Source: Dimorphilus gyrociliatus (lineage: Eukaryota > Animalia > Annelida). Taken from it: a DNA stretch of 40,499 nucleotides. The notes below the pieces were generated by a model. That model was not told the origin of the DNA, made no database searches, and saw only the letters and a list, made by a program, of their open reading frames with translations. Below are positions 1,945 to 39,480 of the stretch, piece by piece. Position numbers and translations under genes: made by a program. The stretch lies in the NCBI GenBank assembly GCA_904063045.1, contig CAJFCJ010000045.1, positions 99,961 to 140,459 on the forward strand, given 5' to 3'. Each line of letters starts with the position of its first letter. The stretch's first letter is position 1.

Positions 1945-2410
1945 ATAATTTGAATAAAGAACAGAGCAAAAATCTAGAAAATTTTCTTAAGAATTGTTGT
2001 AAAATAGAAACCTTACAACTGTCAAAGAATATTGGAATTGGTGATGGAAACTTCAATTTTTGTGAAGCACTTCACAAATCTTCAAATACACTGTCAAGTC
2101 TCTACTTACTTGAATGTAATTTGAATGAAGAACAAACCAAAAATCCACAAAATTTTCTAAAGAATTGTTTCATCATAGTTGAGTAACTATTATATCTGTT
2201 ACTTACTTAATAAATATGCATATTTGTTTTTGAAGTCTGTAAAAGAATGATCATTAATAAAATCATCTATTTTTGTGGCTTATGAAAAATTTCTTCTTCA
2301 ATGTTTAAATAATTTAGAAAATTTAACTTCTGAAAATTATGAACTGTGCTGCTTTGGAAAGAAATATTTTAAGAAAATTGAATCCTTTTAACCACAATGA
2401 CCCAAATTTA
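1945..2410 (+). pseudogene. 5'-truncated relic of the 57-aa LRR family: last ~1.5 units, stop codon and 3' flank
   Basis: ORF 1950-2186 (NKEQSKNLENFLKNCCKIETLQLSKNIGIGDG...KNCFIIVE*). Positions 2150-2410 match the reverse complement of 14398-14660, the 3' end and flank of the giant gene. Confidence 0.8.
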
Positions 2411-3970: not shown

Positions 3971-4059
3971 AAATGCACAAATTTTCATTGATTTAAGTAT
4001 TTAAAAATATAACTTACCTTGAATAGTAATTTATTAGCTTTTTGCTTTTTAAAAGTTAA

Positions 4060-4520
4060 GAATGGAAAAAGCAATGGCACCAGCTTCAACTATACATCAC
4101 TTCAGAAATCTTCAAATACACTAACAAGTCTCTATTTACCTGAATGTAATTTGAATGAAGAACAAACCAAAAATCTAGAAAATTTCCTGAAGAATTGTTC
4201 TAAAATAGAAAATTTAGACCTTAATGAAAATATTAGAACTGGTGATGGAAACTATAATTTTTGTGAAGCACTTCACAAATCCTTAAATACATTGAATTGG
4301 CTGACTCTGAAATCATGTAAAATCAAAGCAAAAATCTAGAAAATTTTCTAAAGAATTGTTCTAAAATAGAAAAGTTATATCTGTCAAAGAATATTGGAAT
4401 TGGTGATGGAAACTTTAATTTTTGTGAAGCACTTCACAAATCTTCAAATACACTAACAAGTCTCTATTTACGTGAATGAAGAAAATTGAATACTTTCAAG
4501 CACAATGACACAAATTTAAT
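4060..4520 (+). pseudogene. LRR-family relic (~2 diverged 57-aa units) joined by a deletion to the family 3' flank
   Basis: ORF 4019-4339 plus a frameshifted continuation to ~4475. Positions 4478-4520 match the reverse complement of 14398-14440. Confidence 0.8.
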
Positions 4521-4792: not shown

Positions 4793-7162
4793 TTATAAAT
4801 GATAAATTGCTGAATATTTTTCCAAAAGCTCACCAGTACAAATATTACCATTGTACCTTGTTGTATTGTAATTGTAGGAATTTCTGCTTCTTCAGAACAG
4901 TATTCGTCCTTTCCAATCATTTATCAATTTACCAAAGTACTGGTCCAATTAGAACCTTTCAAGTTCGTCCACAAATAGTCTTAACAAATGTAATTTCGGT
5001 AGAAATAATTCAACAAAATACCAGTATTTCGTCCAAAGAATATGTATTGAGTAAATGAGTTTCTAGTTCTAAACAAGTAAGTTTAAACAATCAGTTAACA
5101 GTTAAAGAACTGAACTGACAAGCTGAGGAAATGCATTTCCTTTTATACATTTTCCAAAGCTTGGGTTCAAGTGGTCAAAGGATTACAAAGTTGAAATCTG
5201 ATGGTCTCATAATTCTCATGTAACAAAAATATGAAAGACTGTTATATCACACATATAAAATATAATCCTAAGATTAGGGCCACATGCCAAACATGTGCCA
5301 CAGCAAACAGGCCTGTCTCATCAGCATCTGGTGTTTGACCTGCATCTTTTCCATGTTCTTTGTTCCTTTGTTAATTCCCCAAGTAGCCACCATCTGTTAC
5401 AGTCAAAGAGTCTATTTCTTACGAAATAGAGTTCTTTCTAAAGTACTAAAAGCTAACTCTACGAAATAAAAGTCTTTCTAAAGTTCCACCACTATAATTG
5501 CTACGAAATATAAGTATTTCTATAGTTGCACCAGTCTAATTCCTATAAAATAGAAGTCTTTCTAATGTACCCTTATATCTAAGTGCACAACCATTTTCAA
5601 ATTTATACCAAATTTCATAAATTTTCTTTTGTATGTTGGTATAGATTTTTTTTGTATTCTACAAATCTTCTTTGCTGATAGTAGCTTTTGATAAACATCA
5701 ATTAGATCACTTTCTCTCTTTAATTCGTCTATAGTGCTATAAAATGAAGAATGTTCTTGTAAATTTCCATTAAATTTGTTGTGGAAGCCTCCCAAGTCAT
5801 TATTTGTTCAAATAGCTCTCTTAAACACTTACCAATTATTTGGTGACCAGAGATTATTATATATCCATGTTTCCTCCATGTATTTAACAAGATCATGTAA
5901 TTTATTAACCTCAGTTAGATTTCTTTTATTCTTTTCAAATTGATGCTGAATGATATTACCAGGAAGAAATGGAAGGGCTAACATCATCTTAATTGCATAC
6001 CACTCTCCTTTTTTATTTTTGTAGTCTCTACTATAGCCAAGCTCATATTGTTTTTTCAACATTAAAAATATCAAAGTTCTATTGAAAATCATTACCTTGA
6101 TTTTTCTAAATACAGCCTGAGACCAATGAAATAATCATCCACTTATTTCTGCATTTTCCAAAACAGACAAAATTGCTCTCCAGATTGCCTTTTCGAAATC
6201 TATTACAAATCTTTTTGGCTGATGATTATTTGTTAATTCACAAACTGCCTGAAAAATTTACATAGAGTAATTAAGTAAAGAATTACTTTAGCAACACATA
6301 TACAAAAACTTTGTCCTTACTTGAAACAATAGTTCATATGCTTTTTTCTTTTTGAAGACATAAACACAGTTAATAGTGGTACTTGTTTCAAAGCATCATT
6401 TTTTTTCAGAAATCCATGGATAAAGAATATTTGTATAAAAGGATTATGAGCATGTTTAAAAGTACCATCAAGAAACCATGTTTTTGTTGAGGAAAGAAAT
6501 TCAATTTGCTTATTTGTTGCAAATATTATAATTTGAAAGCTATTTTCATTTATATCTTTCCTTAGAAATCTGTCAGGTAAGAAGGTATGGTTAAGAAAAA
6601 TATTAATACCATCTGGCTCTCTTGGATGATTTTTTCTCTTCTGATAATTCACAACTTGTACACAGGATGTTACTTATGGTAAATGTTCTGCATCTGTATG
6701 CTTTATCAAAACCTCTTCTGCAAATCTTCTTCCACTTAGTATTAGATTTTCTTTACTTTTGGTTTTTAAATCACTTCTTATCAATAGCTTCTTTTCATTA
6801 TCCTCATTTCCCAAATGTATGTGTGCTCTTTTACCTAATGTAAAAGAAGATCCATTTTGATTGACACTGACAGGACATCTTTGATTTCTATTTCTTCCGC
6901 TGCAAATCCATATAGTTCTCTTCTTTGTTTTAAACTTTATATTAAAAGAAAAGCCATTATGCACTAATAAATCCTTTCCTTTCTGACTACCATTTTTTAT
7001 AATTTCAAATTTAGAGGAATCAAAAAGTTGAATACTAGATGGTTCTTTTTCAAATGAGCTTTTTTCAACATCACTAACTTCAAAATTAGGATCACAACCA
7101 ACAGTTGAATTTGTAATACCTATTGAAGGATTATCAGTATCCATCACTTGATCATAATACAA
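4793..7162 (-). mobile_element. MULE copy A: FLYWCH + MULE transposase pseudogene (Phantom-like), two introns, interrupted by a solo LTR
   Basis: FLYWCH motif (KGKDLLVHNGFSF..TIWIC..RCP..AHIH, ORF 6674-7162), WFLDGTFK (6317-6652), DFEKAIW..LFHWSQAVFRK exon (~6100-6265), MLALPFLP and TNNDLGGFHNK. Removing the LTR restores ..FENG|NICTGELLEKYSAIYHL*. Contains stops and frameshifts. Confidence 0.9.
4852..5589 (-). mobile_element. Solo LTR, subfamily A, 738 bp, 5-bp TSD ACCAT
   Basis: TG...CA ends (TGTAC.. / ..GTGCACA), with ACCAT at 4847-4851 and 5590-5594. About 98% identical to 13287-14023. Minus-strand TATAAAAG at ~5140 and about four 41-bp repeats in the U3-like part. Confidence 0.92.
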
Positions 7163-7538: not shown

Positions 7539-9341
7539 ATGTATGTTTATAGCTTACAAATGTTAAGTTTAAGAAATGTTTCTTCTAATTTATACTTAAA
7601 CTATAGAATATGTCATAATTATTCATTTAAAGTACCATATGGAATAGGAGATTTAATACTTCAATACTATTACGATAATATAAATCCAGTACGAGAAGAA
7701 GATTTAAAATTTTTTTCAAAAGAAATAACATCATTAACTGAAATATACTGCAATGAACAATCTAAAACTATTCTAAAATTATTAAATATCATTGATACGA
7801 CAAACTTAAAAGCTTTAAAATTTTCTGTTAATGAAATGGATTATTATAATGTTATTAAAATATCTAAGAATATAGTCAACTGCTCACTTGAATCTTTTAA
7901 ATTAAAATCAAAAACTTGTTTGGAAAATGGAATTGATAAAATATTTAATATTTTTGTTCATTCGTGTAATACTTTACGGTTTGTGGCTTTGATAAATTGT
8001 AATCTAAATGAGAAATATTGTGAGAATTTGGGACAAATTTTAAAAAATTGTTCTAAAATTACAGAATTTAATCTTTCGAATAATCAAGAAATGAAGAATG
8101 GACTAAGATTTATTTTTAAAAGTCTTGTGAAATCATCAAATGAATTAAAAATATTAAATTTAGGTGGATGTTCATTGGGTGGTAATCTCTCTAAAGATCT
8201 CAGGAGATTGTTGGCAAAATGTACCAACTTGGAAAAAATGGAATTATCAAATACAAAGTTAGGAGAACAATTGTTGCATATACTCAAAGGTCTTAGTGTC
8301 TCATCCAACAAATTAAAGCTAATAAGCCTGTATAATTGTAATTTGACTGAACAAGTATGTAAATGTTTTGGAAAATTTTTAGAAAATTGTTCTACCATTG
8401 AAGAAATAAACCTTGAAGAAAATGATTTAAGTGGAAATTGTTTGTTTTATTTATGCAAAGGGTTGAAAAAATCATCTGACAATTTAAAGATTATTAATTT
8501 GAGTAGTTGTGAATTAAATATTGATAATAGTAGATATGTCCAGAAACTCTTAAATACATGTTTTAAAATTGAAAGAATATATTTGAAGAATAATTTAAAT
8601 TTACAGGAAGGATTATCAAATATACTTGAAGGGCTCATGAGTTCAGCAGAAAAGTTAAAGGAAATTGATATCACATATTGTATTTTTCCTGAAACGGAAA
8701 ATGTTTTTCTTGAAAAATTTTTATCCTGTTGTTCAAATTTGGAAATATTAACACTAACTGCTACTATTCATACAGGCAGTAGAATGGAATCTGTTTGCAA
8801 AGGGCTTAAAAATTCTTCAAAGACATTAAGAAGCTTAAACACAAGTAAATGTTGGTTTGGTAGAACAAGTTTCTTTTCAATTGTTGAACTGTTTAAAAGT
8901 TGTTCAAGCCTAGAAATTTTGGATTTTGGTAATAATACTGGAATTAAACATGTATTTGAAGATGTTTATAAACATTTTCATAACTTTTCTACAAAATTGA
9001 ATGTTTTAAAGTTACAATGGTGTGGTTTGCATGATAATCATGTAGTAAATTTGGAAAAAGCTTTGAAAAATTGTTTTGGTATTGAAAAATTGTATCTTCA
9101 CAATAATCTTTTATCAGAGAGTAAATTACAGAGTATATGTGACAGTTTAATGAATTCAGCAAAGAGTTTAAAAAAATTAAAATTGGGTTATCATTATCAT
9201 ATGCCTGTTAACATTTCTACTTTCTGCAATCTGATAATAAATTGTTCAAGGTTAACTTTATTTGTTATACACAAAAACACTTATAGTGGTGATGAAATTG
9301 CTGAATTAAAGAGAAACTCAGTAAAAAGTTTAGTAAAGTAA
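7539..9341 (+). CDS. Intact 600-aa ribonuclease-inhibitor-type LRR protein (~8 diverged 57-aa LRR pairs), no recognisable N-terminal domain
   Basis: Uninterrupted ORF with a 57-aa period (CNLNEKYCENLGQILKNCSKITEFNLSNN..LKILNLGG|CSL), homologous to the giant-gene unit. AATAAA at ~9378. Upstream exons cannot be excluded. Confidence 0.85.
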   Translation: MYVYSLQMLSLRNVSSNLYLNYRICHNYSFKVPYGIGDLILQYYYDNINPVREEDLKFFSKEITSLTEIYCNEQSKTILKLLNIIDTTNLKALKFSVNEMDYYNVIKISKNIVNCSLESFKLKSKTCLENGIDKIFNIFVHSCNTLRFVALINCNLNEKYCENLGQILKNCSKITEFNLSNNQEMKNGLRFIFKSLVKSSNELKILNLGGCSLGGNLSKDLRRLLAKCTNLEKMELSNTKLGEQLLHILKGLSVSSNKLKLISLYNCNLTEQVCKCFGKFLENCSTIEEINLEENDLSGNCLFYLCKGLKKSSDNLKIINLSSCELNIDNSRYVQKLLNTCFKIERIYLKNNLNLQEGLSNILEGLMSSAEKLKEIDITYCIFPETENVFLEKFLSCCSNLEILTLTATIHTGSRMESVCKGLKNSSKTLRSLNTSKCWFGRTSFFSIVELFKSCSSLEILDFGNNTGIKHVFEDVYKHFHNFSTKLNVLKLQWCGLHDNHVVNLEKALKNCFGIEKLYLHNNLLSESKLQSICDSLMNSAKSLKKLKLGYHYHMPVNISTFCNLIINCSRLTLFVIHKNTYSGDEIAELKRNSVKSLVK

Positions 9342-10415: not shown

Positions 10416-12372
10416 GGTTTATGGAGAAAACATCCACAAGAGAAAACGTCCACAAGAGAAAACGTCCACAAGAGAAAATATCCACAGGAGAAATGTCCAC
10501 AGTGGAAAAAGTCTATAGGGGAAAATGGCCATGGAAATTAAAATTAATAATGTATGTACATTGTAGTGATAATAAAAATTATGCAATGTCAGGTTCTCCA
10601 TTTTGTTGAGGAACTATTTCCTGTTTATGATTTCCTGTTTTTGTTCCATACAAAGGAGAGTTTGATTCAAATATTATCTGAAAAGGATATTTCACAAGTA
10701 CAACACAATATCAAAAAAATTCAATACACCAGAATATCTCTTGATAATTCTTTTAAATTGAATCAGTTTAAGGTAAAACTTTAATTAATAAAATCTCTTT
10801 TAAAATATTTGAGCAGCCATTTTGGGGTAACTCTCTCTTTTTACTGATAGATAATGGCATATTGCTACAATTGTAAGGAGAAAATGGTTGGAAGACAGCA
10901 TAAAGCAAAGTGTCAACTATGTCACCATTGGGTAATAATTCACAAGAAATGCATGAAAAGTAGGTTAAATTCAATTTTATAGCATATATCATTTTTTTAA
11001 ATGATTGTATTAACAGAAAATCATCTCTTTCTTTGCAATATTTGTGAAGATATTTCTAAGAGAACATGTTTGGTCACCTTACAACAGCTGTCTACTAGTC
11101 AAATCAAAACAGTGAACTCTGAAGTGGAAAAGGAAGTAGAGATGACATATGAAGTTCATAATACTATGAATGATGTTGTTGGTAATGGTCCAGATATTTA
11201 TGAAAATGAAAAAGAAAGTGATAGAAATATGAGAACAGATGTTGATGATAATGATGTTATTGTTGAAAACAACAGCACAGATCTAATGATTGGGTGTAAC
11301 ATTGAAATCACAACAGAAAATCATTCACAGGATTCAAATAATTTGATGGAAACTTCTTTCATAAATTCTCCAACATCAAAAAGAGTAGATATGGAGCCAA
11401 CTTTCAAAATTCTGAAAGGAATGAGTCAAAAAGGTAAAGACCTATTAGCCTATGATGGTTATATGTTTACAATAAAGATGAAAAGGTCAACAAAAATATT
11501 TTGGACATGTAGTGTAAGGAATAAGAACAACAAATGCCCAGCAAGTGTCAATCAATTGGAAGATCAATTCCATCCTGGAAGAATACCCCATTCCCATAAA
11601 AGAGAAGATGGACTGGAAAAGAAAATTTTAATTAAAAATGAAATTAAACAATTGTGTGAAATTGAAACTTTCTCTTCTGGAAAATCAAGAACCAGTGGCT
11701 ATATGGATATTACCCACCACATACCTGGTCAATATATGGTGAAGCAATCAGAACCAACAATGACCTGGAAGGATGGCACAATAGATTAAACAGGAATATC
11801 CATGCCAATTCTACATTGTATGTTATCATTGATGAATTAAAGAGAGAAGCAGAGTTGATTACATTGTACAAGAAATTATTAAGTGAGAAAAAGATATGTT
11901 GACAACAGAGAAAGCCTTATCAGAAAATTCAAAGTCAGATCTTTGGCTTATGGGAGCAATTTGAGGTCAGATTAATATCTGAAACAGATTTATTGGAAAA
12001 GGCAGCCAGCATTTATATAGCATCATAACTCATTCATTTAGCTTGTTACCATGTTATAAACTTAGTCTTTTATAATTTTTTTGCAGTTTGTTTTGTAGTT
12101 ATTAGTTTTTGTTTTCAACATATCAAAATATCATAAATACAAATTATATATTTATTCTCTCAATTTTCCTTTTCATCTTAATCTCCAAAGGTTTTAAAAA
12201 GAAAAATTCTCTTTCACTATGGACATTTTCTCCTCAGTTGTGGATGTTTTCTCCTGTGGATGTTTTTTTCTTGTGGACGTTTTCTCCTGTGGACATTTTC
12301 TCTTGTGGACGTTTTCTCCTCAGTTGTGGATGTTTTCTCCTGTGGACGTTTTCTCTTGTGGACGTTTTCTCC
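10416..12372 (+). mobile_element. Internally deleted MULE (copy C) with paired inverted termini made of 17-bp tandem repeats
   Basis: Left end GGTTTATGGAGAAAAC(G/A)TCCACAA repeats (10416-10520); inverted repeats at 12217-12372. ORF 11001-11789 has FLYWCH and then jumps to the C-terminus (alternate frame AIRTNNDLEGWHNRLN..ELKREAEL). The catalytic middle is missing and no TSD was found. Confidence 0.8.
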
Positions 12373-14397
12373 TGCACCCATTCATTCCTCCTGAATTTTT
12401 AAAGAAGGATATAAATATGAATAATGAGAGGATCATTATCTTTGCAACAAATCATCAATTGGAGCTATTGTCAAAGGGGGAAATTTGGTACCTTGATGGT
12501 ACTTTTAAGATTGCCAATGAACCTTTTATTCAAATGTACTCTATTCATGTATTTTTGAAAAAACATGGACAGCTTAAGCAAGTTCCATTGCTTTTTTCTT
12601 TTCTTTCTTCTAAAAAAAAGAGAGCATATAAGCTACTTTTCCAGGTAAGAATTACATTTCATAAATATACTTACTAATAAGTAATCATGTTAAATTTTTA
12701 AGGCTGTGAAGGATTTAGCTGAAAATTGTGCTCCTAAGAAAATAGTTTTAGACTATGAAAAGGCTGTTTGGAAAACTTTACAAAATATATGGGCTGATGC
12801 CATCTTCACTGGATGTTCATTTCACTGGTCTCAGGCAATATTTAGAAAAATTCAGGTTTATTAATTTCTAAAAATTTTAACAATCAAACTAATATTTGTT
12901 TTGTTTAAGGAACTCGGTTATAGCAGGGAATTTAGAAAAAAAGGGGAGCTTGGGAATCCATGAGAATGATTATGTCTTTACCATATTCACCTCATGGCAT
13001 GATTGAAAATCAATTCACTAAAATTCAAAATCAACTGACAAAAGAAAATAAACTGTCTGATTTGTTGGACTATGTGTCTAATACTTGGATAAAAAATATA
13101 TTTTGGTCTCCAGAGACTTGGTCTGTTTTTAATCAAAGCATAAGAACAAATAATTATCTGGAAGGTTATCATCAAAGGCTCAATAAAATTGTTGGAGAAA
13201 ATGTTTCTTTTTATTTAGTGATTGATGAGTTAAAGAGGGAGGCAGACGTGATAAATCTGTACAAAAAGCTTTTAAGTGAAAGAAAGTGTACTTTGTTGTA
13301 TTGTAATTGTAGGAATTTCTGCTTCTTCAGAACAGTATTCATCCTTTCCAATCATTTATCAATTTACCAAAGTACTGGTCCAATTAGAACCTTTCAAGTT
13401 CATCCACAAATAGTCTTAACAAATGTAATTTCAGTAGAAATAATTCAACAAAATACCAGTATTTCGTCCAAAGAATATGTATTGAGTAAATGAGTTTCTA
13501 GTTCTAAACAAGTAAGTTTAAACAACCAGTTAACAGTTAAAGAACTGAACTGACAAGCTGAGGAAATGCATTTCCTTTTATACATTTTCCAAAGCTTGGG
13601 TTCAAGTGGTCAAAGGATTACAAAGTTGAAATCTGATGGTCTCATAATTCTCATGTAACAAAAATATGAAAGACTGTTATATCACACATATAAAATATAA
13701 TCCTAAGATTAGGGCCACATGCCAAACATGTGCCACAGCAAACAGGCCTGTCTCATCAGCATCTGGTGTTTGACCTGCATCTTTTCCATGTTCTTTGTTC
13801 CTTTGTTAATTCCCAAGTAGCCACCATCTGTTACAGTCAAAGAGTCTATTTCGTAAGAAATAGAGTTCTTTCTAAAGTACTAAAAGCTAACTCTATGAAA
13901 TAAAAGTCTTTCTAAAGTTCCACCACTATAATTCCTACGAAATATAAGTATTTCTATAGTCACACCAGTCTAATTCCTATAAAATAGAAGTCTTTCTAAT
14001 GTACCCTTATATCTAAGTGCACAGAAAGATAATTAGACTTCAAAGGAAGACTTCTAACAAAATTCAAAAAGATCTTTTCTTAATTTGGGAAAATTTTAAA
14101 ACAGGTGAAATTAATGCAAACCAGGTTCTGCAGCTTTGATCAGAATTATATTATTGAAAATAATCGACAATACCCTGATATCAAAAAACTTTACTTGAAA
14201 ACACTGGTCATTTAATTGTAAAACTTGAAAAAAGTTTGTCTTTGTTTTAAAGTTGTTTACAAATAATCAATACACAATTTATATGGTAAACCTGAAGTTA
14301 GATTCGACAGAAAATGTCCCCAAATGCATGGTTTAACCCTAACCTAGCCCTTGTCTCTCTCTAACCTTTTTGATTACCCCTGTTTTCTGTTGACCCC
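12373..14397 (+). mobile_element. MULE copy B: 5'-truncated transposase pseudogene with two introns, interrupted by a solo LTR
   Basis: WYLDGTFK exon to 12644; introns 12645-12702 and 12856-12909; GCSFHWSQAIFRKIQ; one frameshift near 12940; IRTNNYLEGYHQRLN. Removing the LTR restores LLSERK|IIRLQRKTSNKIQ. The right end (~14300-14397) is tentative. Confidence 0.85.
13287..14023 (-). mobile_element. Solo LTR, subfamily A, 737 bp, 5-bp TSD GAAAG
   Basis: TG...CA ends, with GAAAG at 13282-13286 and 14024-14028. About 98% identical to 4852-5589. Confidence 0.92.
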
Positions 14398-14623
14398 ATT
14401 CAATTTGTGTCATTGTGGTTGAAAGTATTCAATTTTCTTTAAAAATTTCTTTCCAAAGCAGCACAGTTCATAATTTTCATGTGTTAAATTTTCTAAATTA
14501 TTTAAATATTGAACAAGAAATTTTTCATAGGCCATAATGATAGATGATTTTATTAATGATCATTCTTTTAAAGACTTCAAAAACAGATATGCATATTTAT
14601 TAATTAAGTAACAGATATAATAG

Positions 14624-17600
14624 TTACTCAACTATGATGGAACAATTCTTTAGGAAATTTTCTAGATTTTTGCTCTGTTCTTTATTCAAATTACATTCAA
14701 CTAAGTAGAGACTTGTCAGTGTATTTGAAGATTTGTGAAGTGCTTCACAAAAATTAAAGTTTCCATCACCAATTCCAATATTCTTTGACAGTTGTAAGGT
14801 TTCTATTTTAGAACAATTCTTTAGAAATTTTCTAGATTTTTGCTCTGTTCTTTATTCAAATTACATTCAACTAAGTAGAGACTTGTCAGTGTATTTGAAG
14901 ATTTGTGAAGTGCTTCACAAAAATTAAAGTTTCCATCACCAATTCCAATATTCTTTGACAGTTGTAAGGTTTCTATTTTAGAACAATTCTTTAGAAAATT
15001 TTCTAGATTTTTGCTCTGTTCTTTATTCAAATTACATTCAACTAAGTAGAGACTTGTCAGTGTATTTGAAGATTTGTGAAGTGCTTCACAAAAATTAAAG
15101 TTTCCATCACCAATTCCAATATTCTTTGACAGTTGTAAGGTTTCTATTTTAGAACAATTCTTTAGAAAATTTTCTAGATTTTTGCTCTGTTCTTTATTCA
15201 AATTACATTCAACTAAGTAGAGACTTGTCAGTGTATTTGAAGATTTGTGAAGTGCTTCACAAAAATTAAAGTTTCCATCACCAATTCCAATATTCTTTGA
15301 CAGTTGTAAGGTTTCTATTTTAGAACAATTCTTTAGAAAATTTTCTAGATTTTTGCTCTGTTCTTTATTCAAATTACATTCAACTAAGTAGAGACTTGTC
15401 AGTGTATTTGAAGATTTGTGAAGTGCTTCACAAAAATTAAAGTTTCCATCACCAATTCCAATATTCTTTGACAGTTGTAAGGTTTCTATTTTAGAACAAT
15501 TCTTTAGAAAATTTTCTAGATTTTTGCTCTGTTCTTTATTCAAATTACATTCAACTAAGTAGAGACTTGTCAGTGTATTTGAAGATTTGTGAAGTGCTTC
15601 ACAAAAATTAAAGTTTCCATCACCAATTCCAATATTCTTTGACAGTTGTAAGGTTTCTATTTTAGAACAATTCTTTAGGAAATTTTCTAGATTTTTGCTC
15701 TGTTCTTTATTCAAATTACATTCAACTAAGTAGAGACTTGTCAGTGTATTTGAAGATTTGTGAAGTGCTTCACAAAAATTAAAGTTTCCATCACCAATTC
15801 CAATATTCTTTGACAGTTGTAAGGTTTCTATTTTAGAACAATTCTTTAGAAAATTTTCTAGATTTTTGCTCTGTTCTTTATTCAAATTACATTCAACTAA
15901 GTAGAGACTTGTCAGTGTATTTGAAGATTTGTGAAGTGCTTCACAAAAATTAAAGTTTCCATCACCAATTCCAATATTCTTTGACAGTTGTAAGGTTTCT
16001 ATTTTAGAACAATTCTTTAGAAAATTTTCTAGATTTTTGCTCTGTTCTTTATTCAAATTACATTCAACTAAGTAGAGACTTGTCAGTGTATTTGAAGATT
16101 TGTGAAGTGCTTCACAAAAATTAAAGTTTCCATCACCAATTCCAATATTCTTTGACAGTTGTAAGGTTTCTATTTTAGAACAATTCTTTAGAAATTTTCT
16201 AGATTTTTGCTCTGTTCTTTATTCAAATTACATTCAACTAAGTAGAGACTTGTCAGTGTATTTGAAGATTTGTGAAGTGCTTCACAAAAATTAAAGTTTC
16301 CATCACCAATTCCAATATTCTTTGACAGTTCTAAGGTTTCTATTTTAGAACAATTCTTTAGAAAATTTTCTAGATTTTTGCTCTGTTCTTTATTCAAATT
16401 ACATTCAACTAAGTAGAGACTTGTCAGTGTATTTGAAGATTTGTGAAGTGCTTCACAAAAATTAAAGTTTCCATCACCAATTCCAATATTCTTTGACAGT
16501 TGTAAGGTTTCTATTTTAGAACAATTCTTTAGGAAATTTTCTAGATTTTTGCTCTGTTCTTTATTCAAATTACATTCAACTAAGTAGAGACTTGTCAGTG
16601 TATTTGAAGATTTGTGAAGTGCTTCACAAAAATTAAAGTTTCCATCACCAATTCCAATATTCTTTGACAGTTGTAAGGTTTCTATTTTAGAACAATTCTT
16701 TAGAAAATTTTCTAGATTTTTGCTCTGTTCTTTATTCAAATTACATTCAACTAAGTAGAGACTTGTCAGTGTATTTGAAGATTTGTGAAGTGCTTCACAA
16801 AAATTAAAGTTTCCATCACCAATTCCAATATTCTTTGACAGTTGTAAGGTTTCTATTTTAGAACAATTCTTTAGAAAATTTTCTAGATTTTTGCTCTGTT
16901 CTTTATTCAAATTACATTCAACTAAGTAGAGACTTGTCAGTGTATTTGAAGATTTGTGAAGTGCTTCACAAAAATTAAAGTTTCCATCACCAATTCCAAT
17001 ATTCTTTGACAGTTGTAAGGTTTCTATTTTAGAACAATTCTTTAGAAAATTTTCTAGATTTTTGCTCTGTTCTTTATTCAAATTACATTCAACTAAGTAG
17101 AGACTTGTCAGTGTATTTGAAGATTTGTGAAGTGCTTCACAAAAATTAAAGTTTCCATCACCAATTCCAATATTCTTTGACAGTTCTAAGGTTTCTATTT
17201 TAGAACAATTCTTTAGAAAATTTTCTAGATTTTTGCTCTGTTCTTTATTCAAATTACATTCAACTAAGTAGAGACTTGTCAGTGTATTTGAAGATTTGTG
17301 AAGTGCTTCACAAAAATTAAAGTTTCCATCACCAATTCCAATATTCTTTGACAGTTGTAAGGTTTCTATTTTAGAACAATTCTTTAGAAAATTTTCTAGA
17401 TTTTTGCTCTGTTCTTTATTCAAATTACATTCAACTAAGTAGAGACTTGTCAGTGTATTTGAAGATTTGTGAAGTGCTTCACAAAAATTAAAGTTTCCAT
17501 CACCAATTCCAATATTCTTTGACAGTTGTAAGGTTTCTATTTTAGAACAATTCTTTAGAAAATTTTCTAGATTTTTGCTCTGTTCTTTATTCAAATTACA

Positions 17601-20600
17601 TTCAACTAAGTAGAGACTTGTCAGTGTATTTGAAGATTTGTGAAGTGCTTCACAAAAATTAAAGTTTCCATCACCAATTCCAATATTCTTTGACAGTTGT
17701 AAGGTTTCTATTTTAGAACAATTCTTTAGAAAATTTTCTAGATTTTTGCTCTGTTCTTTATTCAAATTACATTCAACTAAGTAGAGACTTGTCAGTGTAT
17801 TTGAAGATTTGTGAAGTGCTTCACAAAAATTAAAGTTTCCATCACCAATTCCAATATTCTTTGACAGTTGTAAGGTTTCTATTTTAGAACAATTCTTTAG
17901 AAAATTTTCTAGATTTTTGCTCTGTTCTTTATTCAAATTACATTCAACTAAGTAGAGACTTGTCAGTGTATTTGAAGATTTGTGAAGTGCTTCACAAAAA
18001 TTAAAGTTTCCATCACCAATTCCAATATTCTTTGACAGTTGTAAGGTTTCTATTTTAGAACAATTCTTTAGGAAATTTTCTAGATTTTTGCTCTGTTCTT
18101 TATTCAAATTACATTCAACTAAGTAGAGACTTGTCAGTGTATTTGAAGATTTGTGAAGTGCTTCACAAAAATTAAAGTTTCCATCACCAATTCCAATATT
18201 CTTTGACAGTTGTAAGGTTTCTATTTTAGAACAATTCTTTAGAAAATTTTCTAGATTTTTGCTCTGTTCTTTATTCAAATTACATTCAACTAAGTAGAGA
18301 CTTGTCAGTGTATTTGAAGATTTGTGAAGTGCTTCACAAAAATTAAAGTTTCCATCACCAATTCCAATATTCTTTGACAGTTCTAAGGTTTCTATTTTAG
18401 AACAATTCTTTAGAAAATTTTCTAGATTTTTGCTCTGTTCTTTATTCAAATTACATTCAACTAAGTAGAGACTTGTCAGTGTATTTGAAGATTTGTGAAG
18501 TGCTTCACAAAAATTAAAGTTTCCATCACCAATTCCAATATTCTTTGACAGTTGTAAGGTTTCTATTTTAGAACAATTCTTTAGAAAATTTTCTAGATTT
18601 TTGCTCTGTTCTTTATTCAAATTACATTCAACTAAGTAGAGACTTGTCAGTGTATTTGAAGATTTGTGAAGTGCTTCACAAAAATTAAAGTTTCCATCAC
18701 CAATTCCAATATTCTTTGACAGTTGTAAGGTTTCTATTTTAGAACAATTCTTTAGAAAATTTTCTAGATTTTTGCTCTGTTCTTTATTCAAATTACATTC
18801 AACTAAGTAGAGACTTGTCAGTGTATTTGAAGATTTGTGAAGTGCTTCACAAAAATTAAAGTTTCCATCACCAATTCCAATATTCTTTGACAGTTGTAAG
18901 GTTTCTATTTTAGAACAATTCTTTAGAAAATTTTCTAGATTTTTGCTCTGTTCTTTATTCAAATTACATTCAACTAAGTAGAGACTTGTCAGTGTATTTG
19001 AAGATTTGTGAAGTGCTTCACAAAAATTAAAGTTTCCATCACCAATTCCATTCCAATATTCTTTGACAGTTGTAAGGTTTCTATTTTAGAACAATTCTTT
19101 AGAAAATTTTCTAGATTTTTGCTCTGTTCTTTATTCAAATTACATTCAACTAAGTAGAGACTTGTCAGTGTATTTGAAGATTTGTGAAGTGCTTCACAAA
19201 AATTAAAGTTTCCATCACCAATTCCAATATTCTTTGACAGTTGTAAGGTTTCTATTTTAGAACAATTCTTTAGAAAATTTTCTAGATTTTTGCTCTGTTC
19301 TTTATTCAAATTACATTCAACTAAGTAGAGACTTGTCAGTGTATTTGAAGATTTGTGAAGTGCTTCACAAAAATTAAAGTTTCCATCACCAATTCCAATA
19401 TTCTTTGACAGTTGTAAGGTTTCTATTTTAGAACAATTCTTTAGAAAATTTTCTAGATTTTTGCTCTGTTCTTTATTCAAATTACATTCAACTAAGTAGA
19501 GACTTGTCAGTGTATTTGAAGATTTGTGAAGTGCTTCACAAAAATTAAAGTTTCCATCACCAATTCCAATATTCTTTGACAGTTGTAAGGTTTCTATTTT
19601 AGAACAATTCTTTAGAAAATTTTCTAGATTTTTGCTCTGTTCTTTATTCAAATTACATTCAACTAAGTAGAGACTTGTCAGTGTATTTGAAGATTTGTGA
19701 AGTGCTTCACAAAAATTAAAGTTTCCATCACCAATTCCAATATTCTTTGACAGTTGTAAGGTTTCTATTTTAGAACAATTCTTTAGGAAATTTTCTAGAT
19801 TTTTGCTCTGTTCTTTATTCAAATTACATTCAACTAAGTAGAGACTTGTCAGTGTATTTGAAGATTTGTGAAGTGCTTCACAAAAATTAAAGTTTCCATC
19901 ACCAATTCCAATATTCTTTGACAGTTGTAAGGTTTCTATTTTAGAACAATTCTTTAGAAAATTTTCTAGATTTTTGCTCTGTTCTTTATTCAAATTACAT
20001 TCAACTAAGTAGAGACTTGTCAGTGTATTTGAAGATTTGTGAAGTGCTTCACAAAAATTAAAGTTTCCATCACCAATTCCAATATTCTTTGACAGTTCTA
20101 AGGTTTCTATTTTAGAACAATTCTTTAGAAAATTTTCTAGATTTTTGCTCTGTTCTTTATTCAAATTACATTCAACTAAGTAGAGACTTGTCAGTGTATT
20201 TGAAGATTTGTGAAGTGCTTCACAAAAATTAAAGTTTCCATCACCAATTCCAATATTCTTTGACAGTTGTAAGGTTTCTATTTTAGAACAATTCTTTAGA
20301 AAATTTTCTAGATTTTTGCTCTGTTCTTTATTCAAATTACATTCAACTAAGTAGAGACTTGTCAGTGTATTTGAAGATTTGTGAAGTGCTTCACAAAAAT
20401 TAAAGTTTCCATCACCAATTCCAATATTCTTTGACAGTTGTAAGGTTTCTATTTTAGAACAATTCTTTAGAAATTTTCTAGATTTTGCTCTGTTCTTTAT
20501 TCAAATTACATTCAACTAAGTAGAGACTTGTCAGTGTATTTGAAGATTTGTGAAGTGCTTCACAAAAATTAAAGTTTCCATCACCAATTCCAATATTCTT

Positions 20601-23258
20601 TGACAGTTGTAAGGTTTCTATTTTAGAACAATTCTTTAGAAAATTTTCTAGATTTTTGCTCTGTTCTTTATTCAAATTACATTCAACTAAGTAGAGACTT
20701 GTCAGTGTATTTGAAGATTTGTGAAGTGCTTCACAAAAATTAAAGTTTCCATCACCAATTCCAATATTCTTTGACAGTTGTAAGGTTTCTATTTTAGAAC
20801 AATTCTTTAGAAAATTTTCTAGATTTTTGCTCTGTTCTTTATTCAAATTACATTCAACTAAGTAGAGACTTGTCAGTGTATTTGAAGATTTGTGAAGTGC
20901 TTCACAAAAATTAAAGTTTCCATCACCAATTCCAATATTCTTTGACAGTTGTAAGGTTTCTATTTTAGAACAATTCTTTAGGAAATTTTCTAGATTTTTG
21001 CTCTGTTCTTTATTCAAATTACATTCAACTAAGTAGAGACTTGTCAGTGTATTTGAAGATTTGTGAAGGCTTCACAAAAATTAAAGTTTCCATCACCAAT
21101 TCCAATATTCTTTGACAGTTCTAAGGTTTCTATTTTAGAACAATTCTTTAGAAAATTTTCTAGATTTTTGCTCTGTTCTTTATTCAAATTACATTCAACT
21201 AAGTAGAGACTTGTCAGTGTATTTGAAGATTTGTGAAGTGCTTCACAAAAATTAAAGTTTCCATCACCAATTCCAATATTCTTTGACAGTTGTAAGGTTT
21301 CTATTTTAGAACAATTCTTTAGAAAATTTTCTAGATTTTTGCTCTGTTCTTTATTCAAATTACATTCAACTAAGTAGAGACTTGTCAGTGTATTTGAAGA
21401 TTTGTGAAGTGCTTCACAAAAATTAAAGTTTCCATCACCAATTCCAATATTCTTTGACAGTTTAAGGTTTCTATTTTAGAACAATTCTTTAGGAAATTTT
21501 CTAGATTTTTGCTCTGTTCTTTATTCAAATTACATTCAACTAAGTAGAGACTTGTCAGTGTATTTGAAGATTTGTGAAGTGCTTCACAAAAATTAAAGTT
21601 TCCATCACCAATTCCAATATTCTTTGACAGTTGTAAGGTTTCTATTTTAGAACAATTCTTTAGAAAATTTTTAGATTTTTGCTCTGTTCTTTATTCAAAT
21701 TACATTCAACTAAGTAGAGACTTGTCAGTGTATTTGAAGATTTGTGAAGTGCTTCACAAAAATTAAAGTTTCCATCACCAATTCCAATATTCTTTGACAG
21801 TTCTAAGGTTCCTATTTTAGAACAATTCTTCAGAAAATTTTCTAGATTTTTGCTCTGTTCTTTATTCAAATTACATTCACCTACATAGAGACTTGTCAGT
21901 GTATTTGAAGATTTGTGAAGTGCTTCACAAAAATTAAAATTTCCATCACCAATTCCAATATTCTTTGACAGTTCTAAGGTTTCTATTTTAGAACAATTCT
22001 TTAGAAAATTTTCTAGATTTTTGCTCTGTTCTTTATTCAAATTACATTCAAGTAAGCAGAGACTTGTCAGTGTATTTGAAGATTTATGAAGTGCTTCACA
22101 AAAATTAAAGTTTCCATCACCAATTCCAATATTCTTTGACAGTTTTAAATTTTCTATCTTAGAACAATTCCTTAGGAAATATTCTAGGTTTTTGCTTTGT
22201 TCTTTATTCAAATTACATTCATATAAGTTGAGACCTGTCAGTGTATTTGAAAATTTGTGAAGTGCTTTAGAGATATTAACAATGGCATTTCCAATGACTT
22301 CATTTTGTTGAAGATTCAAAGGTGCAATTGTTGAAAAATTGCTTATGAGATATCCAATTATCCAAACATTTTTTTCATTCAAGTTAGATTGTGGAAAGTT
22401 CACATTTGTTATTTGTTGTGTTGATTCAACTGAATCTGAAAAATCATTAATTTTCTTGTCATTAACACTTTGTTTAGGTACGTTATCAATTTTATTGTTT
22501 TCATTTTCGAAATACTGTTTTAGCTTTGAAAATGCTTTCTTTTGAGAGTCATCAAAAACATTTATATAACTTTTTTCCATTTTGTTCAAATTGTGATGTA
22601 TTATATATTTTGTTGGTAAATTATCAAAAATTTTCAAGTTTATTTTGAAGTGTGTGTTTAACAGACTTTCCAGTCTTTCAGTTTGAGTGGTAAATGTTTT
22701 AAAAAAGCCAGTACGTAGATCATTTATCTCTAAAAATTTGTGCCTTATATATTCAAACTCTAATTTTAATTTATCCATTGCTTTTCTTTCATAGTTGTCA
22801 ATTTTTTTTAAAAATTCTCTTGTAGTTGTTCTGTCTCTTATTAAGATTATATTTAGTTTTTCTTTCAAATTTGCTAATTTCTTCATTGAAAATGTTGAGC
22901 ATTTTTCATGGGTTTCATCCAAACAGGAAATACATAAATTTTCAATATTATGTGTTTGACAATACATCAATAACTCCTCACCATGTTTTTCACATAGACT
23001 TTTGTTCTTTATTTGACTTCCTATTAAAGGTTGAAGTCGATTTTTTGGTAGTTGATCAAACTGGCCAAAAGGTATGTTAACCTTTTCTCTGCAAGCAGGA
23101 CATTCTATTTGATTATTAGCAACTGCTAAGTTTTGTATACATGTGAAACAAAAGGTATGTTGACAAGGAAATATTCTAGGATCATTTCCTATCCAAGAAT
23201 CTAAACAAATCGCACAATCAAATTCTTCTTGGTTAATAAAAAAGCCTGTGGCAGCCAT
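14624..23258 (-). CDS. TRIM-like (RING, B-box2, coiled coil) protein fused to a giant RI-type LRR array; ~2,880 aa if 8 indels are repaired (as written, the frame ends after ~530 aa)
   Basis: C3HC4 RING (CAICLD..PCQHTFCFTCI..CPACR), B-box2 (CEKH..YCQTH..CISCLDETHEKC) and a helical region, then LRR units through ORFs 21660-23303, 21044-21358, 20478-21017, 18989-20335, 16188-18962 and 14821-16056. Ends KNCSIIVE* at 14624-14626, with AATAAA at 14596-14601. 8635 bp + 7 deleted bases - 5 inserted bases = 2879 codons. Confidence 0.8.
14641..22260 (-). repeat. Coding tandem array, 171-bp unit x ~44-45
   Basis: The 171-bp period is read directly (e.g. AACAATTCT at 14641 and 14812). Core units differ only at two recurrent SNP sites and rare indels; the 3-4 units at the gene's 5' side are more diverged. 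Confidence 0.98.
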
Positions 23259-23646
23259 TTTTACACTGTGTATGGATCTTGTTATTTTTACTTTCAGTTT
23301 CAAATTTTCAATAGTATTTACTTTTGTTTTTTAAAATTTGTGATATTTTATGGAAAATGGGAATTTTTAAGTATTTTTTAAATATATCAAATGTGGAAGT
23401 GTCTAAAATACAAAATTTTTAAATGGTTATTGCTAAAACAGGGTTGTGAAGAAGTATCTAAATATAATATTGAATAATATAATGATCACATTATACAGAA
23501 TCTGTTGAGCTGAATTATACTTTTGAAATTTAACATAATAGGGGTAAAACCATACCTGAGTGAAAGCCTAGTCATATTAGGTGAAATGATACTCTTGAAA
23601 TTCCAGACATTTTATTTATTAATACTTAGGAAAAGCATATAGAAAA

Positions 23647-23917: not shown

Positions 23918-24000
23918 ACCCAGACAGAACGTCCCCTGGACAAAATGTCCCCTGACAAAAATCTCCTGGACAAAACATCCCCTGGACAGATTGTCTCTTG
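23918..24000. repeat. About 5 tandem 16-bp repeats (GGACAAAATGTCCCCT), MULE-type terminal-repeat remnant
   Basis: Visible tandem motif resembling the GAGAAAACGTCCACAA repeats at the ends of copy C. Confidence 0.5.
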
Positions 24001-27599: not shown

Positions 27600-27864
27600 T
27601 TATTAATCAATTTCACAAATTGAAATTATGTATACCTGAAATAATTTCCTATAAGCTGTCGTTTTCTTCGATCCCATATATGCAAACAGTAATGGAACTT
27701 GTTTCATTTCTCCATGTTTTTTGATGAACCCATGAACTGTGAACAATTGGTAAAATGGGTCTCTGACACATTTAAATGTTCCATCCAAAAACGTGTGGAT
27801 ATTTTCCTCTGTGGACGTTTTCTCCTGTGGACATTTTCTCTTGTGGACGTTTTCTCCATAAACC
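27600..27864 (-). mobile_element. MULE copy D: terminal repeat joined directly to the DGTFK region (internal deletion)
   Basis: The reverse complement begins GGTTTATGGAGAAAACGTCC (same terminus as 10416), then FLDGTFKCVRDPFYQLFTVHGFIKK..KQVPLLFAYM..AYRKLFQ/gt. Confidence 0.8.
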
Positions 27865-32329: not shown

Positions 32330-33647
32330 TTCACAAAGAAAGAAACTAAAACTTTGTGCAAAATTATAAAGTAACAATATTGAAAAATAGCTTTTTTACT
32401 GTATCTGAAGATTTTTCAAGTCTTTTACAAATACAAAGTATCAAATTACATGGAGGAAATTCATATAATTACAATAAAGCAAACTTCATCAAATGTGAAG
32501 AATAGACAAACTAAAACTTTGAGAAATTTAAAAAGAAAGCTCTTTCAAATTCAAAAATTTATAACAAGATACTTAATTTTCTTTATTTAATCTTCATTCA
32601 AATTACAAAAACAGATTGCTTATTGTATTTGAAGCTTTTTGAAATTCTTAAATATTTTCATTTTGTTCAGATGTTTCTATTTAAAAACAATTTTTTAAAG
32701 AAATTTTCAAGGTTTTTGGTTTGTTCAGCATTCAAATTACATGAACTTAAGTCAAGTAGTTGTATTGTATTTGATAAGTTTCGAAAAGCTTCACAAATAT
32801 TAAAATTTCCATCACCAATTCCAATATTATATGACAGTAACCAAGGTTTTTATTTCAAAACAGTTCTTTAAGAAATTTTCTAGATTTTTGCTTTGTTTTT
32901 TATTCAAATTACAGTTATGTAGGTAGAGATTTTTCAATGTATTGCAAGATTTTTGAAAGGCTTCACAAGTATTAAAGTTTTCATCACCAATTCCAAAATT
33001 TTCACTTAGTCCTAAGGTTTGTATTTTAGAACAATTCTTTAATAAAAATTCTATATTTCTGCTTTGTTTTTCATTCAAAATACAGCCTTGTAAGTAGAGA
33101 CTTTTCAATGTATTGCAAGAATTTGGAAGTTCTTCAAAGATATAAATAATCTCATTTCCAATGTCTTTATTTTGTTCTAGATTCAAAGTTGTAATCATTG
33201 AAAAATTCTTGGTGAGATATCCAATTTTCCAACAATTTTTTTCATTTAAATTAGATTGAGGAAAGATTACAGATGTTACTTGTTGTCCTAATTCAGTTTA
33301 GAAATGTTATCAATTGTATTTTCCAAATACTGTTTTATCTTTGAACACTTTTTCTTTTGAGATTCATCAAAATTATTTATATAATTATCTTCTATTTTGT
33401 TCAAATTGTGATGAATTATATTAAGTTGATTTTTTGGTAGTTGATCAATCTGGGCAAAGGGTATTTTAAACCTTTTTCTGCAACCAGGACAGGTTATTTG
33501 ATTATTATCAACTGGTAATTTTTGTACACATTTGAAACAAAAGGTATGTTGACAAGGAAATATTCTAGGATCATTTCCTATCCAAGAATCTAAACAAATG
33601 TCACATTCAAACTCTTCTTGATTTTTACAATAGCATGTGGAAGCCAT
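32330..33647 (-). pseudogene. Second RING-LRR paralogue: B-box and coiled coil deleted, a few diverged LRR pairs, frameshifted
   Basis: ORF 33288-33647 has a RING nearly identical to the giant gene, then jumps DQLPKN|QLNIIHHNLNK. Frameshift near 33300 into 32827-33198; another near 32830; the LRRs decay to ~32330. Upstream 33650-33900 is homologous to 23260-23515. Confidence 0.85.
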
Positions 33648-36639: not shown

Positions 36640-37012
36640 TTAACTTGGCAACAACAGTGGATTTCTGTTGATAACCTTATAGCAGCATTTCTTAATCTTT
36701 TCCCACAGTTCATCCTCTGACTCAAACTGTGGGCCATCATAGACCATTGTCTTGGTCAGTTGCCACATGTTTTCTTTTAGGCTGAGATCAGGGCTCCTTG
36801 CTGGCCAATCTATGGGTTTGATGTTATTGTTTTTAAAAACACTTTTTGTTTTCCTTGTTGTATGACAGGCCAACATTGTCTTTCTGGAAGATGTACTCCT
36901 GCCAATTTTTACCTCAATTTCTTCTATGACAGGCAGAACATCTTCCACAATGAAGGAGCTATAGTTTTCAGCATTCAGCTTTCTCCTTATCCTCCAGACT
37001 TCAAATATGCCA
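36640..37012 (-). mobile_element. Tc1/mariner transposase remnant
   Basis: HTTRKTKSVF..IDWPARSPDLSLKENMW matches the Tc1 WPxxSPDLNPIENxW motif; the second catalytic Asp region is deleted. Confidence 0.8.
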
Positions 37013-37109
37013 TCAGAGAAAAAAAACCATAAGTTTTAATATAAGCTTAATTAATTAGTTTGACATAGCTTTTTTTGCTAAATTTCTATTTTTTGTCAAG
37101 GTATTAAAG

Positions 37110-37770
37110 TTATTTTTCTATCCTGTCACCTTTGTTGGCAACAACTTGCCAAACTCTTTCTCCCATTCTTTCATATAAATGTTTGACATATTGCCTATTA
37201 TCTTTGTTTATTTTTTCAACCTCTGATTGAATTTTGTCCCACAACTGATTAAGTGATTGGCATCTGACAATTTCATATACATTTTGCTTTAAATAGCCCC
37301 ATAAATTTTCAACTGGGTTTAGATCTCGTGAATATGGAGGCGAAGGAAGGACTTGTATTCTGTTTTCCTCCAGTGTATCTCTTGTTAAACTGGCAATGTG
37401 TGGGGGTGCATTGTCCTGCTGCCAGATGAAGTCTTCACCAAATTTTTCCCTTAACATTGGAAAAACTGTCCCCTGAATAAATTCCGAGTAAATTTCTCCA
37501 TTGATGTTAGAGGGAAGTCTTTGGATGAAGACTTCACCATCTGAAGATATACACCCCCACACCATCACTCCTCCTCCGCCAACAGGGAGTTTATCCCCAA
37601 ACAGTCTTGGATGATCATCCAATTGCCAAGTTAGCAGATGGTCTGGGCCCTCCAGAGAAAATCTGGACTCATCAGTAAAGATAACTTTACTAAAATTGAC
37701 TTGTTGTTGAACCCATCCACCAACTACTTCAAACCTAGTTCTTTTTGCCCTTGCTGTTAAAGGGCAAATT
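37110..37770 (-). mobile_element. Tc1 (DD34E) transposase catalytic domain; N-terminus missing
   Basis: In frame: VIFTDESRFSL..GGGGVMVWGCIS..WQQDNAPPH..SPPYSRDLNPVENLW. There are 34 residues between D(NAP) and E(NLW). Confidence 0.92.
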
Positions 37771-38479: not shown

Positions 38480-39480
38480 CACTATTGCTTACAGAATAGT
38501 CAATAAACAAAACTGGTATACAATTTTTACAAATTGAATATTTGAAAAGGAAATATTCAAGAAGATTTGTTGTTATTGAAAATTTTTATAAAAATTTTTT
38601 TCTATTGCCCATAAATATTGAATTTGTTTGAATAAGAATGTTTTCCCAATACCAATTTCTCCTTGAATTAAAATAATTAAATGTTTCCCTTGAAAAGAAC
38701 AAAAACAAAATAATTTCCTGAAAAGAACAAATTGTATAAATATAAATTTTTCTTCTTGTTGATTTGCTCTATTAATTTGTATATAATTAATTTTGGTAAG
38801 GTGGCACCAATTTCTCAGTGTCAACAACTTTTCATTTATTTCTTTCAATTCTATATAGACTTTACTATTTGTATCAATAGTTTGAATGCTTTCCACTGCT
38901 TCAGGTTCATCATTATTATCATTTGTTTGAACTTCCATTTGCTCTTCTAAATAATAAAATTCTTCATCTTCCTCATCATCTTGCCCATCATCATGTTGTT
39001 CTTCTACTACACTCTCTACAAGGTCTTGTTGTTATACATGATCCTGGTGTATTGGTGTGTCATGATCTTCTGATTCTTGTTCTTTTTCCTCATGTGTTTC
39101 AGAATCATAAAAAAGATTTTTAATGTTTGCACATAAATTGTCAATTAATTCTGAAGATGGTTCTTTATCAAACATTTTTCTTTTAAAAAAGTTAAGCAAT
39201 TCTTCAATTTCATCCCAACTTTGTGTTGCTTTCAATAGAGGTTTTAAATAAAAATAATTGTCAAGGTCCAATCAGTGTTAGAAAACGTTTCTTGAAATTC
39301 TTATAGGCTTGAAAAATGTATCTTAATTGTAGCATTAAGTTTGGTCTATTTAACTGGATAAAAGTTGGCTTTAGGTAATTTTCCAAAGGAAAATTGTACC
39401 AATCATAGAGATCTGGGAAAAAAGGAACAAATTTTTTAAAATGAATTTTAAAATATTATTTGAAATGAACCAACCATTGT
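38480..39480 (-). pseudogene. NACHT/STAND-type NTPase relic (NLR-like)
   Basis: LIILIQGEIGIGKTFLFKQIQYLWA..F (hydrophobic strand, Walker A, then a W-A motif typical of NACHT) followed by a stop. Upstream broken ORF 39032-39271. No Walker B or LRR was seen. Confidence 0.55.

Follow-up and report, generated by a model that had tools for sequence, protein, structure and literature searches.

A gene family of Dimorphilus gyrociliatus joins a TRIM-like RING–B-box–coiled-coil head to ribonuclease-inhibitor-type leucine-rich repeats

The genome of the annelid Dimorphilus gyrociliatus carries a family of genes whose products combine a RING finger, a type 2 B-box and a coiled coil (RBCC) with leucine-rich repeats (LRRs) of the ribonuclease inhibitor (RI) type. 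This RBCC-LRR family is real and, within the literature searched, undescribed. Its most extended member, hereafter the array gene, lies on the minus strand of a 40,499-nt stretch of contig CAJFCJ010000045.1 (assembly GCA_904063045.1, positions 99,961 to 140,459), which we call the window and which is AT-rich (~28% G+C). The gene reads from an ATG at 23258 to a TAA at 14626–14624 and encodes the RING, B-box2, coiled coil and LRRs in this order and without introns (Table 1). We consider it reasonably probable that the array gene is a TRIM-like, E3-type member of the family in which an LRR solenoid selects the target, that the array grew recently, and that the frame breaks in its assembled sequence are errors. 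The existence of one chain with ~89–90 LRRs hinges on all eight of these breaks being assembly errors, which is likely, if unproven.

At the level of sequence and modeled fold, the head of the encoded protein is TRIM-like. Pfam RING models match the gene product with E-values of 3e-8 to 9e-7. In an alignment of 34 family sequences, no variation occurs at seven RING ligands (C15, C18, H34, C37, C40, C53 and C56), and conservation of the eighth is 90% or higher. The RING of the array gene also has Ile17, Pro54 and Arg57, which we take, from other RING E3 ligases, to be the residues that RINGs typically use for contact with the E2 enzyme. The B-box is recognized weakly by Pfam zf-B_box (E 0.03 for the gene product), and only 3 of the 34 family members pass E 0.01. 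In the same alignment, however, conservation of all eight B-box2 ligands, spaced as C89-x2-H92-x7-C100-x2-H103-x5-C109-x2-C112-x4-H117-x2-C120, reaches 90% or more. AlphaFold2, run with the family alignment, modeled the N-terminal product (pLDDT 79.7) as a RING, a B-box, a 63-residue helix, a disordered linker and then strands every ~28 residues. Furthermore, a family profile of the first ~300 residues matched, among solved structures, TRIM2 (1.6e-16), the RING-B-box of TRIM21 (6e-15) and the RBCC of TRIM3 (1.5e-14), as well as TRIM56 and TRIM32.

The repeats that follow the head are LRRs of the RI type. Each unit of the array encodes 57 aa, composed of one 28-aa and one 29-aa LRR. A phmmer search of the LRRs against solved structures ranked mouse RNase inhibitor first, with E 4.6e-19 and an alignment of 222 residues free of gaps; NLRP1, NLRP7 and NLRP14 came next. 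Foldseek searches with the modeled LRR fold also returned NLRP and RI chains (E 1e-7 to 1e-6), with an FBXL2 chain among the matches. The hallmark of RI-like LRRs, an alternation of strand and helix every 28–29 residues, is present in the models together with the 57-aa period. Pfam left the LRRs unrecognized both in the gene product and in the 34 family members. The matches that it did report on the repeat open reading frame (ORF), such as BMT5-like, ATP_bind_1 and Rop, were rejected as spurious and inflated by repetition. Standard domain annotation thus overlooks the family, since Pfam picks up neither its LRRs nor its B-box, and similar families may hide in other genomes.

The combination of an RBCC with RI-type LRRs, first proposed for this locus in an original prediction made from the DNA sequence alone, recurs well beyond the array gene. 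When the RBCC (aa 1–345) served as query in an exhaustive HMMER search, 2,672 proteins were retrieved at E ≤0.001, and 34 of the best 150, which were inspected for LRRs, carry an RBCC followed by LRRs of the same type; the family therefore comprises 34 protein clusters or more. D. gyrociliatus contributes eight of these proteins, 485–851 aa long (CAD5126870, CAD5126727, CAD5118051, CAD5126962, CAD5126609, CAD5126625, CAD5126989 and CAD5126338), which UniProt labels as 'RING-type domain-containing protein' or as uncharacterized. The number of 57-aa units ranges from 2 to 16 per family member (4–32 LRRs), compared to ~45 in the array gene, so the giant array is an outlier rather than the family design. 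Duplication of units recurs in the family nonetheless, as CAD5126625 has three near-identical ones. The paralogue closest to the array gene, P0002, consists of one ORF without introns and lies on contig CAJFCJ010000096.1, which has the base composition of the window and shares interspersed repeats with it. P0002 sits beside a lectin gene and a NACHT-caspase gene; the latter (L015, 18335–22139 of the same contig) combines NACHT with a caspase domain (Peptidase_C14) in a product of >1,146 aa.

A maximum-likelihood tree of the RBCC, built from 32 LRR-bearing sequences, 17 RBCC proteins with another C-terminal domain and amphioxus TRIMs, separated all 32 LRR-bearing sequences from all of the others by a branch with 97/92 support. 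Within the tree, the sequences of two species are interleaved, and the array gene groups with CAD5126870 and CAD5126727. The 17 RBCC proteins without LRRs (P0021, P0025, P0030, P0034 and 13 others) are ~500 aa long and share a strand-rich C-terminal domain of ~230 aa to which no Pfam model corresponds.

At least 22 family members are recorded solely from Logan assemblies. Seven proteins (five family members, the NACHT-LRR protein P0058 and the LRR protein P0072) were traced to contigs, and all of these came from runs SRR23372216/28/29/31. The contigs have 23–29% G+C and the family genes on them are single ORFs, three of which (~1,166 aa each) stand in tandem on one contig. A Cupin_5 gene beside one of the Logan family genes shares 63% identity with a D. 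gyrociliatus protein, compared to 52–58% for the next-best matches, which are bacterial. The source animal is thus apparently a relative of D. gyrociliatus. The Cupin_5 (DUF985) gene itself is present in both animals (L004 13452–13979; P0172 in D. gyrociliatus), has Bacteroidota proteins (the same 52–58% identity) as its nearest other relatives, and may be an old transfer from bacteria. Judged from these sequences, the RBCC-LRR family is lineage-restricted, intronless and multigene, and is so far found only in D. gyrociliatus and one relative. A word-indexed protein search does not inform its range: it returned one amphioxus TRIM with the RBCC alone and, with the family alignment, a single member of the family together with TRIMs and NLRs of amphioxus. 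An Atlas search gave B-box plus LRR_4/LRR_8 clusters of unrecorded taxa at scores of 0.85–0.86, below the reliable level, and these were not used.

The joining of the RBCC to the LRRs in the array gene is supported by independent assemblies. The original prediction had named a misassembly at 22300–22500 as grounds for refutation, and we saw no sign of one. The junction (22115–22957) is contained in a single, mismatch-free contig of 843 nt in the DNA run X1 and also in run X2, and in a 530-nt contig in run X4; in all, single contigs of this kind span it in four public runs. The paralogues share this junction. For these two reasons, a misassembled junction was rejected. The accompanying claim that the RBCC runs in frame and without an intron into the LRRs stands for the first 532 codons, which form a single open frame from the RING into the fourth repeat unit; it fails beyond this point, where eight frame breaks interrupt the array.

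The array is also highly uniform in the unit-by-unit comparison, for which it was cut at a fixed anchor. Of 43 units, 24 have the same DNA sequence, and only two substitutions recur: T alternates with C at unit position 30, a synonymous change, and C with G (Gln/Glu) at position 61. The two units closest to the 5' edge of the array are more diverged. The LRR part would have expanded very recently to its ~45 near-identical 57-aa units. Unequal crossing-over is a likely cause, because the edges of the array are more diverged and the interior has segmental patterns. A triplet composed of a Glu unit, a consensus unit and a T-to-C unit recurs exactly 10 units apart (starts at 20158 and 18443, within 14683–22034), which hints at a 1,710-bp segmental duplication within the array. 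The depth of run X1 agrees with the assembled array. In this run, the repeat is assembled as a collapsed cycle of 201 nt (171 + 30) with a depth of 8316, compared to 230 in the unique flank, which gives ~36 copies; the 31-mers of the cycle occur 39.7 times in the window. The similarity of these two numbers means that this array holds every copy of the unit in the genome. We therefore rejected a dispersed satellite, as the single array fully explains the DNA depth.

The eight breaks divide the gene into overlapping open segments of 532, 101, 143, 197, 503, 965, 465 and 75 aa. The segments tile 23258–14627 without gaps, and their repeat parts all encode one common 57-aa unit. When every broken unit is reset to 171 bp, the gene has 8,637 nt, a multiple of 3, corresponding to 2,878 codons plus a stop and ending in a tail typical of the family. 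Four of the breaks lie in runs of A or T, two of them at the T/C-variable site; a further one is at the C/G-variable site, and two units share an identical loss (T4 to T3 at unit position 27). The published assembly was built from PacBio P6-C4 reads with PBcR and polished with Quiver and, using 101-bp reads, with Pilon (PMC7854359). Pilon polishing would have been ineffective in the array because 101-bp reads are unplaceable in 7.6 kb of 171-bp units. The eight breaks are therefore most likely, if unproven, uncorrected PacBio indel errors. No contig of the short-read runs carries an indel; the collapsed contigs were placed once each, which left four of the break sites out of reach. This result means little, since real substitution variants are also missing from the contigs of the DNA run.

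The array gene is likely transcribed, as runs X2–X4 resemble transcriptomes. Their contigs total 36–60 Mb and reach 16–28 kb at most, compared to a longest contig of 252 kb in X1. Coverage by these contigs extends over the gene body and is lacking in the 190 nt upstream of the ATG. In X3, the unique region at 22202–23244, which includes the RING, has a depth of 6–10, and the array a depth of ~500, or ~50 times that of the unique part.

If the breaks are errors, the native product would have ~2,878 aa and ~90 LRRs, and would repeat one binding surface many times. By analogy with TRIMs, the coiled coil would dimerize the protein and the B-box would promote its assembly, while the RING is predicted to recruit an E2 enzyme. 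The C-terminal module of a TRIM picks the target. As this module is here an LRR solenoid, its concave face is the likely binding site, and a target bound there would be ubiquitinated. The gene neighborhoods and copy-number dynamics of the family, together with the analogy to TRIM5/TRIM21 and LRSAM1, suggest a role in cell-autonomous immunity. Such a role is also suggested by the lineage-restricted expansion, the tandem arrangement, the variable number of repeats, the NACHT-caspase and lectin neighbors, and the LRR period of P0058. According to the genome paper, D. gyrociliatus has few expanded families, and these are mostly local duplicates linked to immunity, although the paper does not name the RBCC-LRR family (PMC7854359).

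Several observations weigh against this interpretation. An exact look-up of the 532-aa product found no annotated gene, and the array gene is missing from the public gene set. Transposons and remnants of the family surround it, and pseudogenes are frequent in such surroundings. With units this similar to one another, an open phase in the array does not speak for selection. Neither the breaks at ~21671 and ~21068 nor the 5-bp insertion is a simple change in a homopolymer. Runs X2–X4 are labeled '?' or 'DNA?', so that their RNA nature is a guess, and X2 does not include the RING-coding part, its coverage being absent upstream of 22987. AlphaFold folded 16 units alone into a regular solenoid of 32 strand-helix repeats with moderate confidence (pLDDT 67, pTM 0.50). 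Finally, the functional side is inferred for every family member. The missing annotation, the three relics and several transposons in the window, the complex breaks and an open frame that requires no selection, added to the presence of eight breaks in the assembly, would all fit a recently dead or truncated copy. In such a copy, the breaks would be real, the product would be limited to 532 aa (the RBCC and ~8 LRRs), and the remaining array would be an untranslated, satellite-like runaway expansion. We regard this as rather unlikely. Decay should bring substitutions too, whereas the 41 homogenized units have 8 indels, each within one unit, and 0 singleton substitutions, and no unit contains a stop codon made by substitution. 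Collapsed consensus contigs restore the missing base at both of the first break sites (X1 and X3 at 21462; X4 at 21667), although they are uninformative on any single unit. Moreover, the sequencing chemistry and polishing predict exactly such errors (PMC7854359).

Assembly is difficult for long arrays whose units hardly differ, and the true number of units could lie far below or above 44.6. We consider such a length artefact improbable in view of the ~36 copies estimated from the depth of X1 and the 39.7 in the window, and because multi-kb PacBio reads would span much of the 7.6 kb. The repeat-to-unique depth of ~113 in X2, instead of ~40, points the other way, but X2 may be RNA or come from another strain. 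Across 19032–23450 of the window, the ratio in this run of ~113 for the repeat and of ~35 for its Glu variant compares with 43 and 6 assembled copies; the excess may reflect another strain, RNA coverage bias or a longer array. It is also conceivable, if somewhat unlikely, that the family is real but that its LRRs do not sense foreign molecules. They could instead serve as a housekeeping substrate adaptor of the F-box/LRR kind, as an RNase-inhibitor-like binder, or as a scaffold like the NLRP proteins of the oocyte lattice. RNase inhibitor is indeed among the best matches by sequence and by fold, as are NLRP proteins that form part of the cytoplasmic lattice in the mouse. The lineage restriction, expansion, tandem arrangement and variable repeat number of the family speak against such roles, as do the NACHT-caspase and lectin neighbors and the link of expanded families in this genome to immunity (with the RBCC-LRR family unnamed; PMC7854359). 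We hold as doubtful a more ambitious version of the receptor-ligase proposal. In it, the breaks are errors and the ~2,900-aa TRIM-type ligase winds its ~90 identical LRRs into a multi-turn superhelix with a periodic face. It would act as an avidity-based intracellular receptor-E3 whose targets are polymers, for example capsids or filaments. Unequal crossing-over would alter the number of repeats fast, so that receptor length would vary between strains, and the family would be a new TRIM class that acquired the LRR sensor of NLRs.

The array gene shares with TRIMs, of which TRIM2, TRIM3, TRIM56 and TRIM21 are the nearest by sequence, the order and spacing of a C3HC4 RING, B-box2 and predicted coiled coil. 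It differs in its C-terminal RI-type LRR solenoid and in a head that the Pfam B-box and TRIM_CC models barely detect. The modeled coiled-coil helix of ~63 aa is also shorter than in TRIMs with solved coiled coils. The gene fits no TRIM class, as its C-terminus is not PRY-SPRY, NHL, COS-FN3, PHD-bromo, MATH, ARF, filamin or TM. LRRs are absent from every TRIM class (C-I to C-XI) and subfamily (A–I), and the classification paper does not mention them (PMC3503706). The original prediction knew of no described RBCC-LRR class, and our full-text searches, in which the coverage of journals was incomplete, likewise found no description of a TRIM-LRR class.

With RNase inhibitor and the LRR domains of NLRP and NLRC proteins, the array shares alternating 28/29-residue repeats of strand and helix; it differs in having ~90 near-identical repeats, compared to the 15–16 repeats of RNase inhibitor. 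We found no match to NACHT in the 532-aa N-terminal product or in the 34 family members. NACHT domains occur only in separate genes, and membership in the NLRs was rejected. One such gene, P0058 of the related animal (L012 5836–11157, SRR23372229), encodes a 1,773-aa NACHT protein with ~18 LRR pairs. The pairs have a 57-aa period and align without gaps, at 23–25% identity, to the LRRs of the TRIM-like family. The LRR module may thus be shared among different heads. A comparable case is known in fish, where finTRIM and NLR-C are expanded, fast-evolving multigene families with the B30.2 module in common (PMC2657112). There, a target-binding module occurs in both a TRIM and an NLR family of one lineage, as may be the case here, though it is B30.2 in fish and the LRR in these animals. 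The RBCC-LRR family would mirror this sharing and add evidence that recognition modules are exchanged between TRIMs and NLRs.

An LRR domain also picks the substrate of a ubiquitin ligase in F-box/LRR proteins (FBXL) and in the bacterial LRR-NEL effectors (IpaH/SspH). The array gene differs from these in that no F-box or NEL was seen and that its ligase domain is a RING in a TRIM-type module. LRSAM1, a single conserved gene, has non-RI LRRs first and a RING last, with a SAM domain and no B-box. It resembles the array gene in carrying LRRs and a RING E3 on one chain; the order is opposite in the array gene, which has the RING first and the LRRs last and no Pfam match to SAM. The LRRs of LRSAM1 are reported to recognize bacteria and its RING to ubiquitinate them (PMC8567218, PMC11863841). 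Hence, the notion that the RBCC-LRR arrangement is new in concept did not survive comparison. Recognition by LRRs is already coupled to an E3 in LRSAM1, F-box/LRR and LRR-NEL proteins, and module shuffling is documented for the B30.2 of finTRIM (PMC2657112). What the family does is join TRIM ligases and LRR receptors, two of the main toolkits of cell-autonomous immunity, which are normally separate. Furthermore, the near-perfectly homogenized coding array offers a clear case for studying the growth of repeat proteins and calls for caution over frameshift artefacts when genomes are assembled from long reads.

Table 1. Features of the array gene and of related sequences in the window (positions are those of the window).
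Feature	Position	Strand	Basis
Start codon (MAATGFF...)	23256..23258	-	Earliest ATG in the open frame; N-terminus fits family consensus 'MA...Y.I.E'
C3HC4 RING finger, aa 14-57	23088..23219	-	Pfam zf-RING_2 3.2e-8, zf-C3HC4 1.7e-7; AlphaFold pLDDT ~90
B-box type 2, aa 85-124	22887..23006	-	Eight zinc ligands at least 90% conserved in family; pLDDT 87-92
Coiled-coil helices, aa 125-187 and 193-202	22653..22886	-	AlphaFold: 63-residue helix, pLDDT 80-88; TRIM3 RBCC profile match reaches position 195
Low-confidence linker, aa 203-283	22410..22652	-	pLDDT <50 at aa 216-280; little conserved and length-variable in family alignment
Diverged first LRRs ahead of the regular array	22268..22409	-	Strand/helix spacing ~28 aa from ~aa 285 (AlphaFold); aligns to RNase inhibitor
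Tandem array, 44.6 units x 171 bp	14640..22267	-	Tandem Repeats Finder: 98% matches, score 14903
Eight frame breaks	14827..21671	-	-1 at ~21671, 21462, 21068, 20486, 20472, 16194, 14827; +5 at ~19051-19056
Stop codon TAA after ...FLKNCSIIVE	14624..14626	-	Translation; relic copy 1950-2186 (+) shares tail, ...NCFIIVE*
AATAAA signal	14596..14601	-	Downstream of stop
Degenerate paralogue	32694..33647	-	RING ORF 33647-33288 without B-box or coiled coil, then separate LRR ORF 33198-32827
Two LRR 3'-end relics of the family	1935-2186, 4019-4476	+	tblastn 73-94% identity to array unit

The window also contains other sequences related to the family or to NLRs. The degenerate paralogue is 72% identical to aa 1–75 and 57% identical to aa 204–345 of the array gene product in tblastn comparisons, and Pfam confirmed its RING. 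On the plus strand, 7539–9341 is an intact ORF for a 600-aa protein of RI-type LRRs only, with no RING and no NACHT. Its best match among solved structures is RNase inhibitor (E 2.7e-27), and it is ~35–40% identical to the array unit; an exact look-up of its product found no annotated gene. A MULE-type transposon that carries a FLYWCH zinc finger is present twice, once on either side of this region (5562–7162, minus strand; 11001–13493, plus strand). Tandem repeats of 16 bp (TGTGGACGTTTTCTCC) at 10424–10501 and 12239–12374 are read through by ORFs beside or inside the second MULE copy, and similar 16-bp arrays are present at 23923–23988 and 27794–27857. Near the far end of the window, an ORF at 38573–38938 (minus strand) ends in a NACHT P-loop (GEIGIGKT; Pfam NACHT 7e-5) and adjoins Tc1-like DDE_3 transposase ORFs at 36640–37622 (minus strand). 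This fragment may be what is left of an NLR gene broken by a transposon.

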